A program made the position numbers and the translations under genes. This document shows positions 254 to 19,625 of a stretch of 64,000 bases of DNA, one piece after another; within the stretch, counting starts at the first letter, position 1, and every line of letters begins with the position of its first letter. The DNA is from Hyphochytrium catenoides (lineage: Eukaryota; Protista; Hyphochytriomycota). Where the stretch lies: assembly GCA_900088475.1 (NCBI GenBank), contig FLMG01000516.1, positions 74,527 to 138,526 on the forward strand. Direction: 5' to 3'. A model generated the notes under the pieces. It did no database searches, was not told the DNA's origin, and saw only the letters and a list, made by a program, of their open reading frames with translations.

Positions 254-1224
254 ACCTTTACAGATCGTCAACCTTTCCCTGTATCACTTGGACATCGGAC
301 AAGATAGTCTTAAGTCAGTCGTTTGTGTGTGGTTCTTGCTCTAGCCAGAGCTTCCCGTTGAATAACCTTTCTACATAAGGACATTTTCTCCCATTGAGGT
401 CTTATAAATCTAGCTAAAGCGAGCTATGTCAATGGTTAAATATTATAACCCTAAGCCTATATGCTACTCAGTTCGAGGAGGTGGGAAGCGATCGCCACAC
501 AGGCCAAGCAATGACTCTCAACAGATTGGTGCGCTTGTTACTCTTGATGCTGATAGGAAGGCAGTATCGACGGGTCAGAATGCATCTCTTGCGGAGAAAC
601 AGGTCTTGTGGGTGGAACTTCGTTCTCCGATCAATATAGATAGCGCCCAACGAGCTCCCTCATGCCTTTGCTCCTCAAGGCAAACAGCTCCCTCCAGGAC
701 TCATCTCTCCGCCGATAGCGGCCATCTTTCATCTCAAGCAAGCTAAGCTGCTCTTCATTATGATGATATCACCTGCCTCCAACAGCTGTAACAGCCCTCT
801 GACCTCCGACCCCAATATTGCAAGCTCTCACACCGCACTTGCTTCATTCTTTACTTAAGGGGCCTGGTGGGATGTTCTTGTCGGCTTTGGCATCTCACAT
901 TGCTGCTTTACTTCCCGCAGCCGCAGCCATCAGTAGCCGTACAAGATACGCAGTCCAGACTTTATATCAGCAGACACTTTAGACTCCAGCCCGACTTTAT
1001 TGCAGCCGTAGCAGCAGGAGCCCTTCTGGACCCCATCAATACTATCGTCAATCCAAACCCTACTGCTTGCTCTCACACCGTACGGCTCGTTGTTGAGTAC
1101 TGACCACTACTCACTCTTCACTTGAACAGTGATGTGCTGCTGCTCTGCTGCTAGAGCAATGCTAGAGCAGCAGCAGCTGATCAAACTCTGGCGGCATGCT
1201 CGCTGGGAAATTTGAGACTAACGC

Positions 1225-1470
1225 TGTGGCTGCTGCCGCTGCTGCTGCTGCTAGTAGCTGGCTCTACTCCTGGTGCCTGCTGCTGCTGCCGCCGCTGCTG
1301 CCGCTTCGGCCCCTCCCTCCTGGTGCTTTCTGCTGGTGCTGCTAGTTCTAACTGCGGCTGCTACTGCTGCTGCTGCTGCTGCCGCCGCTGCTACCGCCGC
1401 TGCTGCCGCTTCGGGCCCTCCCTCCTGCTGCTTCTGCTGGTCCTGCTAGCTGCGGCTGCTACTGCTGAGG
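1225..1470. repeat. (CTG)/(CCG) trinucleotide-rich tract with an internal ~105-bp tandem duplication
   Basis: ccgcttcggcccctccctcctg (1301-1322) recurs as ccgcttcgggccctccctcctg (1406-1427). Each copy is flanked by ctg/ccg runs with cta interruptions. Confidence 0.85.
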
Positions 1471-2054
1471 AGGAGGAGAAAAATGATGAAGATGAAGTAA
1501 CAAGAGGAGCATCTGTAACCCCTTTCCCAGTAACCAGATCAGATTGGCTGATTCAGGCCTCGATAACTGAATCTTGCCGTGGATGTGATATGTCTCCCTC
1601 TGTATCTTATCTCTTCGCACTCCAGCAGGGGCTTCACCCTTCGACCTGCCGCTGCCCAGCAGCCAGATCAGAGAAGAACGGAGAACTATGACGAGGAGCG
1701 AACATCGAGGAGCTTCGCCAGAGTCTACTGCGCCCTTCTCACGCTTACGTACGGAAGTTCTCCAGCACTAGGACCTAGCGGCTTCCATCCTCCGTCCTCC
1801 CCTCCTTCCATCCGGGCTATAGAGTTCTCTACAACTCTGTGCAAGCCTGTGAGTGGCTCCTCCTAGTGGTCCAAATTCTCTTGGCGAATCTCCCGATCTT
1901 CCGACTAGATACTACCGCCAGCCTGTCCTTAGCCTCTAGGTCTCGGGCCGCGGAGATCGAACCCTCAGAATAGAGCTTTCTAGTTGTGGAGAAGAAGTAA
2001 ACAGACTGCAAGTAAGCGTAAGGTAGTCCCCAGTCCTCGGGCTCGGTGGCCTGT

Positions 2055-11400: not shown

Positions 11401-13086
11401 CTACCGGGCACGTAAGAGTTTCGTGACGACGAGAAGCAGCAGCCACAGCATCACAGTGTTTGAATAAAAGTCTTTTATATATTGTAGAGAGATGTACAAT
11501 GATCACCATAGCCTCAGCTCTTCCTCCCCTCTATCATCTTCACTTGCAGCAGCATGATGGTGGAAAAGAAGGTAGGGCAAGACGAGAAGAAGAGGAAAGG
11601 GAAGGAACCAGCAGCAGCACTTGATGATGATCTACGCTCAAGAAGCTCTAGCCTCTTCTTCCTCTCCAACGGCCCTGTTCTTCTTCACCAACCGCTACCC
11701 TACGCTTATGCTGCATTATTGTAGCCAGTCTGCTTCAGGAGGACCACCGTCGTCTGAATAAAAAAGAGGGAAAGAAGAAGGAAGCGAACTCCATGGTGGT
11801 GGCGGCGGGTGGAAGGAAGCACCGATGAGAAGATGATGATAATGATGATGAAGCCGTCAGAGTTGTGGCAGTGGTGTGGCAACAACGAACACAGAGCGAT
11901 GAGCCGGATTGGTTGCACAGCAGCAGCAGCCACCCGCCGCCGGACGAAAGAGGAGGACTACTGGCAGACGCTTGGTCGGTAGTAGATGTGTAAGAAGGGT
12001 TGAACTGAGCGGAAGGATTATCATATTCCCCAATATTGGGCTTTCTTCACCTGGGTGAGAAGCTGTGTGCTCGATGTTCCTTCTGTCCTTGCGGGATCGA
12101 TCATGTTCTCTAAAGACAGATTGAAGGCTCTATCACTCCTCCTTCACAGCGGCAGTTGCAAGTAATATTCCATCCACACTCTCCCCTCTATAAATTATGA
12201 AGGAAGCGTTCTGTTCCCATCATCAGCAGAGGCGACAAAAACGCTTTAGAGTACAAAGAACTTGCTAAAGATGAGACCCCGGCAGTACCACTGCCAGGCT
12301 GCTTCCTCGTCCGTTATTCGCCTTACTTGCTGTCAATGGATCTTTTGTCCGTTCTCTTATCCTCCTCTTAGAGACGAGGAAACGCCTTACCGTGGACTGT
12401 CTTCTTATCTTCCTCGCTGTCTAGTTCTATATGAAGCAGCAGCAGGCACTCTCTGGAGAGCTGATTCAGGAGCTTTCCTCTGCCTACGACAGCTCGCTGG
12501 ACAGTCGATTGCATGGATGATGACCGCAGCAGGTTGGCCGTCATCGCTCCTTAGGCCGTGACTGACTGACTTCTCCTCCTTCTTGACTTGAGAGGTACCA
12601 ACAGTGCTATTTTCGGATTATTGGTCATGCTTTAGAGCTATACTACAGTCGTACGTGTGAGAAGATACCCTTAGGGTAGGACTTATTATTATGAACTGGC
12701 CAATATTTTTCAATGGCCACACTGTCTAATCTAATGCTCCCGGATAAAACCAAAAAAGCGGCCGTAGACCAACCGAAAATTCGTGCCAACAAATGACGGA
12801 CTTCCGACCCAGCGCCAAACACTAATTTAGGAGACCGGACTTTAGTTGCGAGCAGATAGTCCTCGGAAACCCGTTACTCTACACTAATCAAGCCACAACC
12901 GTTGCAGGAATGTGCACCAACCGAAACGCGGCATCACCTCCCAAAGAATGTGGCAGCGCCAGGACACGTTGTCCTCTGCGACCTATGGGGCTCCAAGCCG
13001 GACCCACCGCACACGCAGGAGATCGGATCCTTAGCTTAGGATCCTTCCTGGAGGATGATGGGGCAGACACTTTTCCTCTTTGTCCC

Positions 13087-13370: not shown

Positions 13371-13765
13371 AGACCATGTAACTCACCACCACCATGACGG
13401 CGGTGCCAAGGAGATAAAGCTGTTATTGAACCTTTCTCTCTCTGTTGCTGTCGTGCCAGACAGGACGTCAAGCCCACACTCATCACCTAGAACTACGGTG
13501 GTGATTGATCTGCGTCTGCCATCCTTCACTCTTCTATTTTCCTTCTTGCTGTCTTCCTGCGTGACAACCCATCGGTGGTTCTTTGACTTCTTCTTCTTCA
13601 GCCCTTCTTGGCATTGCCCCTTTGCCCTCCTACTACCTTCAAGTGGTCAAGCCAACAATTAATGCTGCTCCTTGGTGATAGCTAGTCCTAGCGCGCCATA
13701 AACAGTCATCAACTTGAGCTCTGCTGTTCGGTAAGGTCTGGCCGTGTGCTGATCAAGTGTCCAGT

Positions 13766-15235
13766 ATGGCAAAAACAAGCACCCGTCGGGCACCATCTCA
13801 ATATTCCTCTCCTCTTTTACAGCCGGAATGCAACCGTGTGGTGAACTCAATGGTCCGATGTCTTCACCATGCTTGCGAGGACAGCAGCAGTGGCGCAGCA
13901 AGAACTTATTATGGCATCACGACGTCATTCCAATCAGTGGAGATCTCTAACAGTCATCGTCGTGGTAATGGACTCAGCGCTGACACTGATCTTCTGCCGG
14001 ACAGCTACAGCGATGTCGCAGAAGAGATGCCGCAAGGAAAGGTCCTGGTCACTGGCGGCGCAGGGTACATCGGCAGCCACGTCGCATTAGAGCTACTTGA
14101 AGCCGGCTACTCTGTTACGATTGTTGACAACTTAAGCAACTCAAATATTGAGTGCATCCACAGGCTGCATGAGCTTAGTGGGTGCTCGAAGGATCAACTT
14201 TCCTTCCATGAGGCGGATGTCAGAGATCAGGAGAAATTGGACGAAATTTTCTCCACTGAAGGTCCGATCGACCACGTCATACATTGCGCAGGGCTCAAGT
14301 CTGTGGCAGAGTCCATCAAGAGCCCCGAGTTGTACGCTGACGTCAACGTCCGAGGAACGCAGGTGCTTCTAGAGGCCATGCATCGTCACCACTGCAGCAG
14401 CATCATCTTCTCTTCTTCTGCCACCGTTTACGGTGTTGGAGCTTGCCCCTACAGAGAAATATCAGCTGTTGGGAATGGCATTGCGCATCCGTACGGAGAA
14501 ACAAAGCTTGCGGCTGAACAACTCCTTGAGCAGCATTCAAAGTCTCCGAAAGGCATTGGGTGGAGCATTGTCGTGCTGAGATATTTCAACCCAGTCGGCG
14601 CTCATCCGAGTGGTAGGATTGGCGAGGATCCTTTGGGGACACCAAACAACTTGATGCCGTACATGACGCAGGTGCTGGTTGGAAGGCGTCCTATGTTGAC
14701 TATCTTTGGCAGTGACTTTGATACACCTGATGGGACCTGTGTGCGGGACTTCATCCACGTGGTAGACCTGGCCAAAGGGCATGTAGCTGCTTTGAAAAAG
14801 GTGGAGAAGGATGGACACTCACGGACGCAAACCAAGCCGCATAGGGGTAGTCTCTCGGTGTATAATCTAGGAAGAGGAGAGGGAGTATCAGTCAAGCAGA
14901 TGGTACAGGCGATGGAGCGGGCCACGGGCCTTGCATTAAAACACAAGGTTGGACCCAGAAGAGATGGAGATTCTCCTGAGGCCTGGGCCAATGTTGAGCT
15001 TGCCAATAAGGAGCTCAACTGGAAGGCCACGCTGTCCCTGGAGGAGATATGCAGAGATGCTTGGAACTGGCAACACAAGAACCCTTCTGGCTATCGTCAA
15101 GCAAAGAGTAAAATGCAGCTCCTCCAGAATAGTCCTGAGGAGGAAGCGACGGAGGATGGCGACGCCATCCTCATCAAAGAAGGTATGCAGGATGCAAGGA
15201 ACTGGCAAACATGGAGACCCCTTCCGGCTAGTTGA
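13766..15235 (+). CDS. GALE: UDP-glucose 4-epimerase, intronless (alternative start ATG 14027)
   Basis: KVLVTGGAGYIGSH (NAD-binding), VIHCAGLKSVAES, FSSSATVYG, PYGETK (YxxxK), LRYFNPVGAHPSGRIGEDP, PNNLMPY, DGTCVRDFIHVVDLAKGH, WNWQHKNPSGY. Confidence 0.97.
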   Translation: MAKTSTRRAPSQYSSPLLQPECNRVVNSMVRCLHHACEDSSSGAARTYYGITTSFQSVEISNSHRRGNGLSADTDLLPDSYSDVAEEMPQGKVLVTGGAGYIGSHVALELLEAGYSVTIVDNLSNSNIECIHRLHELSGCSKDQLSFHEADVRDQEKLDEIFSTEGPIDHVIHCAGLKSVAESIKSPELYADVNVRGTQVLLEAMHRHHCSSIIFSSSATVYGVGACPYREISAVGNGIAHPYGETKLAAEQLLEQHSKSPKGIGWSIVVLRYFNPVGAHPSGRIGEDPLGTPNNLMPYMTQVLVGRRPMLTIFGSDFDTPDGTCVRDFIHVVDLAKGHVAALKKVEKDGHSRTQTKPHRGSLSVYNLGRGEGVSVKQMVQAMERATGLALKHKVGPRRDGDSPEAWANVELANKELNWKATLSLEEICRDAWNWQHKNPSGYRQAKSKMQLLQNSPEEEATEDGDAILIKEGMQDARNWQTWRPLPAS

Positions 15236-15809: not shown

Positions 15810-17260
15810 AAAATAAGAAACAAGAAAGAACTATAGTAGGCCAAAAAAAAAAGAAGAGCAAAGCAGCAAGGACTTCACCCGGCCCTCTATGACCAGGCAT
15901 TGACGGGGAGCGACTGTGGGGCCACCAATCGCGAGGAGGCGGGGAGCTCGTCCTCCTCTCCGATGATGCGAGAGAGGAAAAAGTGTAGATCCTCCTCATG
16001 ACCAATAACCACCAGGATATTGTCAGGCGCTGGAGCTGGAGCGGCGGCAGGGGCGGGAGAAGAAGCAGAAAGGAGAGGAGAAGAGAGCAGAGAAGAAGAA
16101 GGGTGAAAGGCGGCAAGGAAGGGCGCTGAAAGTCGTAATCTGGTAACTATCATACGGGCGGCCTCCTCATGTAAAGCCAAAGAAACTTGTCTGATTAAGC
16201 GATGACGATAGAAGTGTACATCGCGTTCCAGAGCAACGGTTTGGTCAGCCTGGACAGCACAAATAGTATTGACAAACGCCGCAACGGAGGCAGAGCCCCC
16301 ACCAAAGGACTCCAAAAATAGAGGGAGGAAGTCGATCTGGTGGGCATGGCAAGCGGCCTGGTACTTGTGGCGCTTATGGTCCTCAACCGCAGCCATCTGA
16401 TATCCAGACCGTTCCGCTGCATAACGAAGGGTAACAGAGACATCAAAGGCTGTGACTGGGAACCGATTACTATATTCAGGGACCGTCAGGTCACCAGGGC
16501 GGGAGAAGGGAGAGCGAGAGAGCGAGTGGAGCGGCTCACGTGAGCAGGAGTATCCGGCGTCCGACACTGCAGAACACAAAAGGGAGAGAACACTGATATG
16601 ACAGCGGGAGGGGCCACCCGTGCGACAGACCATCGCATGGTCGCCGTAGACATCCATTTCGGCTCTTCGGCAACTCTCGCAGACCGAAGGGCCCTGTAGA
16701 AAAGGAAGACCAAGGATGGGCCGAAGCATAGCCCGAAATAAACAGGCGACTGAGCCTTATGCAGCAGCGTCCCAGAGGGAGAAGCGGCAAGGGAAGCCCC
16801 AGCATGAGGGAGAGAAACAGAATGAAGACGAGCCCGAGGAAGTAGGAGAGGGAAAAGAAAGAGGAAAACGGAGATGAGCGCACTTCAAGAGACGGAAACA
16901 AAACTGATGCTGTATTTTCCTTGACGCCAACCAGCTGAAGGAAGCCATGGCCTCCTCTGACTGCTCCGGCAACTCCATGGCATCGTAAAGGGAACGAAGA
17001 GAGCACTCATCCGCCGCAGGGGTCCTGCAGCGTGATCGGAAGGCAAGCCTACTAAGAGTGCAGACACAAGTTCATAGGAAGAGAGCGCTAGAGCACCAAG
17101 GAAAGCAGGACGACAGATAGCGGAAGCAGGCAGGAGACCCAGACCGCCAAGCTTGATGGGAAGAGAAGCCTGTTCCATGCTGCCTGCGGAACCAGGAAAG
17201 GGAACCGAGAGTCCCAACCCACAAGACGACTAAACAACCGCTCCAGGAAGTTGACCCAGG
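15810..17260 (-). mobile_element. 5'-truncated, frameshifted non-LTR retrotransposon (CRE-like): RT thumb, CCHC knuckle and restriction-like endonuclease
   Basis: EQASLPIKLGGLGL (RT thumb region), PHAGA.LAA.P, FRAMLRPILGLP, CESC...DVYGDHAMVC (CCHC), AGYSCSREP, RPGDL, FDVSV, KRHKY, FLPLFLESFGG, QVSLALH. This is the canonical REL motif order. Confidence 0.88.
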
Positions 17261-17289
17261 ACCACGCTCTCAATGGCAATGTGTGCAGG

Positions 17290-17667
17290 CTGGGGCACTC
17301 TATTCTATGAAACACCATCTCTGCATTACTGGTTGCAAGAGGACAGAGATCCGTCTGTAGGACGAGAGATAGAGGAAGACCCGTATTCCCACACCTGTCA
17401 GAAATGATGGCCCTTAGCCATTCTTCCCAGAGGACTCGGCGTAGAGGGCGACTTTCCTCCTGTGCGCACGCTCGGCGACGTATCCTCCTGTCTGAGCCGC
17501 TGCTGCATGGAGTAATGTGTTGGATTGCAGTGAGTCGGAGACGACAGTAACGTCAAGGAGCGTCGTGCAGACTTTCTGATATGCTCAAAGCCCTCAATAA
17601 ATGATGGCCAGGTCACCTGGGCGATGATGACCATTGGGCAGTACCCTGTCGGGAGGTTCAGCCCTGG
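17290..17667 (-). mobile_element. Decayed REL-endonuclease fragment of a second CRE-like family (copy A)
   Basis: The reverse strand reads, with frameshifts, RAEPPDRVLPNGHHRPGDLAI...LLDVTVVSDSLQSNTLLHAAAA...ERAHRRKVALYAE...SYRRISVLLQ..NAEMVFHR. It is nucleotide-homologous to 17975-18390. Confidence 0.85.
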
Positions 17668-17911
17668 GTTCAGCTCTATCCCAAAAGTCCCGCCGGACGA
17701 GCAGGGCCAAGGAGAAGATCCCGCAAGCCATCATGACGTAGTTCTACATCGATGAGCCAAGAGGCAGACCATCGCGTTGCGGTCCGTGGTCCCCAAAAAG
17801 CCCATCGAAGTCCTCATGGCCCATGGTACCACCTGCGCTGCTCAGCGCATCAAGGATCGGCCAGGTATCTTCGAAGCTTGAGGCGGTACAGATACTGTAC
17901 TGTTATGTATG

Positions 17912-18410
17912 ACGGTTCGTCATGATGGCTTACGGGACCTTCTCCTAGGCCTTGCTCGTTCGGCAGGACTTTTGGCCAGAGCCGAACCTCCCGACAGGGT
18001 CTTACCTAATGGTCATCGCCCGGGTGCCCTGGCCATTTTTTGAGCCTCAGAGAGTGTGCACGCTTTTTGACGTTACTGCCTCCGACTCGCTGCAACTCAA
18101 CACCCTACCTCATGCAGCGGCTCCGGCAGGGCGCATAGCAGGAAAGTTGCCCTTTACGCCGAGGATTGTGAGGATCAAGGCTATGGTTTCCGGCCCTTCT
18201 TAGCGTGGGCGTCCTTTGGCGGAGCAACGGAGACAGTTCCTTCGACCCTGATGAAAGAATGGCTTCGGGGCCATCTCTGACAGTTGTGGGAGTGTGAGTC
18301 TTCCTCTTTCATCTCTCATTGCCACTGCCTACAGCCGCATATCTGTCCTATTACAGCGTTGTAATGCAGATGCTCTTCCATCGCATGCCGCCGACCTGCG
18401 CACATTGAGA
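17912..18410 (+). mobile_element. Decayed REL-endonuclease fragment, same family as copy A (copy B)
   Basis: Reads, with frameshifts, VRHDGLRDLLLGLARSAGLLARAEPPDRVLPNGHRPG...FDVTASDSLQ...YAEDCEDQGYGFRPF...SFGG...YSRISVLLQRCNA. AATAAA copies follow at about 18515-18535. Confidence 0.85.
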
Positions 18411-19625
18411 ACGCGGTCCTGAGTCGGTGGTAAGTAAGTACGGTAGTTTAAGTTACCTGCACAAAGTCTAGCAGTAGTTACAAGTCCTCCAATTATTACT
18501 TGGGTTTCCCCAACTAATAAATCAATAAATAAAAGTACTGTAGATACTGTGCGAGCATGGCGAACTCGTTCTGTACAAACTAATAAAAAAGCGTGGAAGA
18601 GCCAGATCGTACTCGTACGCACATTGAGCGGTTGTTCCTGTAGTAATGTGCGATACGGAAGTACCGCTCAGGGATTTCAATAGCTAATTATATAATACAC
18701 GCACTTTTCATCCGCTCGTTCATTCGTACCCTCATTACTCCGAGGGATTATCTTATGACATCCAAGGTGGGGAGTTAGATGCAACACAAAGTGTGCGGTA
18801 AAGCAGCAGTGTGTCAAGACCTCCCATTCAAAGATAGTGTATTCCAGCTCACTCAGACGTGAAGAGTTAGGAGATAGGTGCGTTAATCGAGCGCCCAATG
18901 ACAGGGAATCTGTGAGCGCACAAATCTACCTCACCCAGCAAAACCATTAGATAACTGCGTCCGGACGCACCGAGTTGACGCACATTCCTCGGGCGAACTG
19001 GACTGCCACTCGCACATTCCTGTCCTCAAACCGTTGTCCTACTGTAGGAATCGTGAAATGCCCAGGGCATAATTGGCCTCAATCCCCTCCTCCTCCTCTC
19101 TCTGGACTTCTTCCATATAAAGCTCCCCTGGCCCAACCCACGCGGTTGTATCTCGGAAGGAATCAGTTGAGGATGATAATTGATGAGTGCGCGCTGTCCG
19201 CCTACCACCGGCCCGCCCCGCCCGGCATCACATGTCAACCGTCGCTCGCCTTGTCCTGGTGCTTGCGGTCATCCAACCTCATCTTCCCTAGGTCCTCTGC
19301 GCCGTGGAAGAGCTGCTCCCTCAGTCTTTGTGCATTCTGTGTCGCGCGGCCTTACAGAGAGGGCTATGAGGAGCAAACATTGAGGAGGGAGCGGCATTTC
19401 GACAATTATCCGCTGTTGCACCAGGACGAAGTTGGAAAGCTCTGTTCGCTGCCGATAGACGGGGAAACTAACACAGTCGAGGACCGACAAGCATCAGACA
19501 GGCCTCACGGCTGGATGCTTCGGAAGGGCACCTCTGCTGGATTCATCACCTTCTCAGTGTCGTCGGCAGATAGCAGAGGGACCACGGCTCTCTAAGCATT
19601 ATCCCAGCCTGACGGCGCCAGCCCG

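Follow-up and report, generated by a model that had tools for sequence, protein, structure and literature searches.

Multiple three-base tandem duplications in a dead retroelement fragment of Hyphochytrium catenoides

In several systems, short duplications arise by distinct routes. Trapped topoisomerase II in yeast (top2-F1025Y,R1128G and K720N) and human TOP2A K743N, corresponding to indel signature ID17, generate exact de novo duplications of 2-4 bp where no repeat existed and without microhomology, and these are explained by fill-in of 5' overhangs followed by end joining, the best-documented way to make short exact duplications without microhomology (Stantial 2020, 10.1101/2020.05.03.075358; Boot 2022, PMC8795545). 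Their commonest size is 4 bp, the spacing of the two nicks, and they belong to somatic or laboratory mutator states. Cut-and-paste transposons of the CACTA and PIF/Harbinger types make 3-bp target-site duplications, and a 3-bp direct duplication can be left at a site after excision; however, PIF/Harbinger elements target TWA, footprints are usually imperfect, and PIF-type excision is typically precise. Replication slippage also yields tandem copies of a short unit, but needs re-annealing. Meanwhile, 5'-truncated, dead-on-arrival non-LTR copies, such as Drosophila Helena and similar elements, serve as neutral recorders of mutation, and such studies usually report a deletion bias and a 1-nt mode. 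Neutral indel spectra in eukaryotes normally peak at 1 nt and lean towards deletion. A neutral spectrum dominated by 3-bp duplications was not found described in the literature searched, which is the absence of a hit and not proof of novelty, and the locus below is compared with each of these systems in turn.

The DNA analysed, referred to as the window, is a stretch of 64,000 nucleotides (contig FLMG01000516.1, positions 74,527 to 138,526) from the 61-Mb assembly GCA_900088475.1. Two head-to-head, 5'-truncated fragments of one repeat family, 76% identical to each other, are situated at positions 17200-17895 on the minus strand (copy A) and 17904-18428 on the plus strand (copy B). The family has at least 30 copies in the genome, 69-80% identical to A, and no copy is closer to A than about 80-82%. 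Copy B belongs to a different subfamily, about 87% identical to the copies at loci L002 and L006 (L-numbers denote genomic loci analysed here). The L002 copy contains a 708-aa open frame with a reverse-transcriptase domain at its start (RVT_1, E = 5e-20), and its only matches among solved structures are R2 proteins, which are weak (E = 4e-5). A tblastn search of the window with this frame showed that A and B correspond to its C-terminal 200-240 residues, with A homologous to residues ~455-695. By eye, the L002 translation shows a CxxC...H....C stretch followed by RHD, RPGD and DVT motifs, resembling a CCHC motif and a restriction-like endonuclease of the PD-(D/E)XK type, but no profile match was obtained, which leaves the presence of this nuclease core undecided. 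According to the blastn extents, the copies start at variable points and share a common 3' end near L002 positions 2078-2088, as expected of 5'-truncated insertions of an R2-like non-LTR retroelement. Directly downstream of A, a 280-aa ORF (15887-16741, minus strand) is a distant relative (31% amino acid identity) of the same C-terminal endonuclease-like domain, and the same juxtaposition of the two families recurs in L037 (2108-2732) and L039, suggesting a composite or a preferred nesting site. In addition, six of about 27 loci of this family (L005, L006, L009, L026, L027 and window 17200-18428) hold two copies in inverted orientation, head-to-head or tail-to-tail and often only a few bases apart; in the window, the two copies are of different subfamilies, so they are separate insertions and not one inverted duplication.

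The original prediction listed six exact triplet duplications in A, each present as a single unit in B, and this observation is confirmed. On the plus strand, the doublets are located at 17404-09, 17501-06 (within 17499-506), 17540-45, 17561-66, 17601-06 and 17624-29 (within 17623-30), and the pairwise alignment shows B with a single unit at these sites, among many other gaps of 1 to 80 nt. The interval 17400-17650 holds nine exact period-3 doublets against 2.8 expected from dinucleotide-preserving shuffles (0 of 300 shuffles reach nine), whereas periods 2 and 4 are not raised, and B holds 3 against 5.7 expected. With two copies, the polarity was acknowledged as unproven, and a family consensus already carrying the doubled triplets had been named as a refuting outcome. 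An alignment of 31 copies settles this point: at the insertion columns of A, 19/20, 18/21, 18/21, 20/21, 18/22, 19/22 and 22/27 of the other copies that cover the site have no residue, so these are gains in A. The seven columns include a further A-specific +3 at 17483-89 (AGG/GGA on the element strand; 19 of 22 copies without a residue), which had not been listed.

The gains differ in detail. The +3 at 17623-17630 (CAT on the element strand) forms a period-3 run of 8 nt, with no residue in 19 of 20 other copies. The doublet at 17601-06 is part of an A-specific +7 patch at 17595-17606 (18 of 21 copies without a residue), best read, by inference, as two 3-nt duplications plus one extra T; L013 carries an independent ATT duplication at the same place. 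The duplications at 17561-17566 (ACG on the element strand) and 17540-17545 (GTC on the element strand) are exact and without flanking microhomology. The gain at 17499-17506 (GCA on the element strand) is possibly shared with copy L024, and that at 17404-17409 (22 of 27) is a +3 whose doublet is exact today but matches the ancestral neighbour, as given by the family majority, only after two substitutions. Furthermore, A contains a +2 (AT doubled) at 17579-17582, absent from 22 of 22 other copies, a loss of about 76-80 nt with its junction at 17426-17432 (called as -45, +2, -33), where the frame changes, an older gain of about 12-13 nt at about 17664-76, and further +5, +6, -11 and -1 changes downstream.

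Because the region is coding in the family, frame-preserving selection, in which the triplets are single-codon duplications dating from an active, translated lineage and only in-frame indels would have survived, was the serious rival. A is dead, with two in-frame stops and at least three frame changes; nevertheless, it holds one frame from 17860 to 17411 through every +3, reading as doubled H, T, V, A and G residues, and the +7 and +2 changes together restore the frame after about 20 nt, with both stop codons lying between them. The original prediction took the frame to be unselected in a frameshifted copy, but selection had to be excluded by test and not assumed. Private substitutions across all copies fall on codon positions 1, 2 and 3 in 241, 256 and 195 cases, against 245, 257 and 190 expected (chi-square p = 0.89), while columns varying between subfamilies number 20, 14 and 64, showing that the method detects selection where it acted. 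Private deletions are multiples of three in 19 of 76 cases, no different from one third, whereas insertions are so in 105 of 203 (p = 9e-8). Duplications of unambiguous position start at codon positions 1, 2 and 3 in 8, 5 and 8 cases. All the doublets are still exact and hence young, and the same signature occurs outside this family. Selection for frame is therefore rejected and considered very unlikely.

The size spectrum peaks sharply at 3 nt. Pooled over this family and a second family (F2), private insertions of 1 to 6 nt number 29, 22, 68, 14, 8 and 22, and private deletions of 1 to 3 nt number 17, 11 and 9, followed by a long tail. The 3-nt class exceeds the 2- and 4-nt classes (p = 4e-11), and its share is higher among insertions than among deletions (Fisher p = 2.6e-4). 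The absence of an excess at 3 nt over 1, 2 and 4 nt in neutral DNA had been proposed as a refutation, and in these polarised copies the excess is present; nearly all of them, however, are transposon-derived, formerly coding DNA, and although integrase loci were found, LTR pairs were not compared. Of the 68 insertions, 39 are exact tandem copies, and many of the 6-nt insertions are two adjacent triplet events. In contrast to the usual pattern of dead-on-arrival copies, insertions outnumber deletions 203 to 76, although the deletions are longer. A simulated family with a monotonic indel spectrum, passed through the same aligner and caller, returned a monotonic spectrum without a 3-nt peak, which argues against a pipeline artefact.

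The duplications also lack microhomology. The period-3 run in the derived sequence is 6, 7, 8 and 9+ nt long in 24, 9, 3 and 3 of the exact 3-nt duplications, against a chance expectation of 21.9, 11.0, 4.1 and 2.0, so the events arise at single-copy triplets and need no flanking identity, as in the topoisomerase II-type signature. Ordinary slippage, possibly helped by weak repair of 3-nt loops and representing the birth stage of trinucleotide microsatellites, is favoured by the tandem nature of short insertions, by the 1-2 nt of flanking period-3 identity at some sites (runs of 7-8 nt), and by compound 6-nt insertions and 3-unit runs, which show that sites can be hit again. However, 24 of the 39 exact duplications have no flanking identity and only 3 sit in runs of 9 nt or more, and neither 2- and 4-nt events nor 3-nt deletions are raised. 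The mismatch-repair inventory had been suggested for inspection, and MSH2-, MSH3- and MSH6-like genes are all present, judged by the best solved-structure match of one exon each; a loop-repair defect through gene loss is thus not supported, and slippage is considered unlikely.

Excision footprints of transposons with 3-bp target duplications (CACTA, PIF/Harbinger or an unrecognised family) fit the exact size and the lack of microhomology, and regional hot zones could reflect insertion preference. The presence of such elements had likewise been put forward for examination, and the genome contains at least 20 matches to the PIF/Harbinger transposase domain (PF13359; contigs C3817, C1617, C2723, C3013 and others, including loci L073-L075), several with uninterrupted frames of 380-517 aa, so these elements may still be active, together with 5 matches over the cut-off to the CACTA transposase (PF02992). 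However, the duplicated triplets are diverse, only 1 of 24 unambiguous ones being TAA and none TTA, no leftover terminal bases are seen, CACTA copies are few, and seven to ten insert-and-excise cycles within 230-1000 bp of one copy is a lot. Footprints thus remain possible but disfavoured. No convincing sequence motif was found around the 24 unambiguous sites; a G excess four bases downstream (16 of 24) fits the period-3 composition of the coding strand. Recurrence at the same sites shows only a weak excess (55 against 40 pairs, p = 0.025), which the aligner may inflate.

The signature is not confined to this family. The younger family F2, the ~360-nt 3' end of another LINE-like element with at least 40 copies at 84-97% identity, has 10 of 23 private insertions at 3 nt. 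This abundant repeat, at L051:1304-1664 and at least 40 other places, comprises the acidic C-terminal tail, stop codon and roughly 120-nt 3' UTR of that element and has two alternative 3' ends. Composite segmental pairs show 10, 17 and 4 gaps of 3 nt, mostly exact tandem copies, and nine further repeat pairs, some overlapping those above, show 26 of 65 gaps at 3 nt, 18 of them exact. The ratio of 3-nt gains to substitutions is similar in all sets, about 0.06 to 0.11. An assembly or sequencing artefact is very improbable: the assembly is fragmented (4759 contigs) and reads, the third refuting check proposed, were not inspected, but no common platform error makes exact 3-nt copies in non-repetitive sequence, and the same insertion is inherited by related copies at different loci, for example shared events in F2 and the L037/L039 pair.

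Simultaneously, the rate varies by region. Heterogeneity across copies is significant (p = 0.0036), with A holding 6 callable events against 2.1 expected. In locus L013 (contig C2951, 59331-62575), a regional hot zone, both the family copy (9 private 3-nt insertions) and an adjacent unrelated repeat (10 of 11 extra triplets on the L013 side relative to L048) carry the excess, which speaks for a positional effect and not an element-intrinsic one. Reverse-transcriptase error at the time of insertion is rejected, because A has about 5% private substitutions, the signature crosses element boundaries in L013, and it appears in composite segmental pairs. Within the window, a single-copy island at 11500-12000, upstream of the GalE-like gene at 13757-15235 and with no ORF above 80 aa, is saturated with doubled and tripled triplets of many different sequences. 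It holds 31 exact period-3 doublets against 6.3 expected; this is the only clearly non-coding unique DNA examined, and its events cannot be polarised. Periods 2 and 4 are normal there, the doublets share no phase, and repeated hits can grow 2-unit sites into 3-4 units.

The inference that a mutational or repair bias makes exact 3-nt duplications where reading frame is not under selection is supported by every test that could be run. In the favoured explanation, given a probability of about 0.55 as a whole, copy A gained at least seven exact 3-bp tandem duplications after it escaped selection, through a genome-wide, regionally uneven process that creates such duplications de novo at roughly 0.09 per neutral substitution, by filling in and joining double-strand breaks with a 3-nt 5' stagger. 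The analysis itself demonstrates the polarity, neutrality, 3-nt mode, exactness, lack of microhomology, occurrence in other repeats and regional heterogeneity, whereas the staggered-break and fill-in step and the enzyme responsible are inferred. A real mutational bias is very probable; given that, staggered-break fill-in is the simplest mechanism and the best fit among those originally suggested, because no microhomology is needed, but is held only tentatively, an unknown polymerase or repair stutter is somewhat less likely, and transposon footprints are unlikely. No enzyme making a 3-nt stagger was identified, and dependence on non-homologous end joining and clean enzyme removal was not assayed. 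Exact tandem insertions of 2, 3 and 4 nt number 8, 39 and 5, so that 4 bp is about five to eight times rarer than 3 bp; the process works like the topoisomerase II signature but is not a member of it, and it is the standing germline spectrum of a species. The lesion would have to be a 3-nt stagger, or a 4-nt stagger trimmed by one base on one side.

A spectrum that peaks at exact 3-bp duplications without any repeat or microhomology points to an enzyme-made lesion and not to polymerase error. A bolder and rather doubtful possibility is that this lineage has an endogenous activity making 3-nt 5'-staggered breaks in regional hot zones, which could be a nuclease, an unusual topoisomerase reaction, or a retroelement or transposase endonuclease acting without insertion; fill-in and end joining would then give a germline indel spectrum whose mode is a de novo 3-bp duplication. 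This would be a new mutational signature, and it would lengthen DNA, seed trinucleotide repeats, and add single codons to genes at roughly a tenth of the substitution rate. If the observed spectrum is real, there is a new signature to place beside the 4-bp topoisomerase II signature, and a steady source of in-frame single-codon insertions, which genes tolerate far better than frameshifts. In this genome, indels in multiples of three cannot be taken as evidence that a sequence is or was coding. If real, the process also gives a ready explanation for the triplet-rich islands and low-complexity coding tracts of this genome. At window positions 1001-1500, an imperfect GCT/GCC-rich trinucleotide tract lies inside a 159-aa ORF (1212-1691, plus strand), with 29 period-3 doublets against 12.6 expected.
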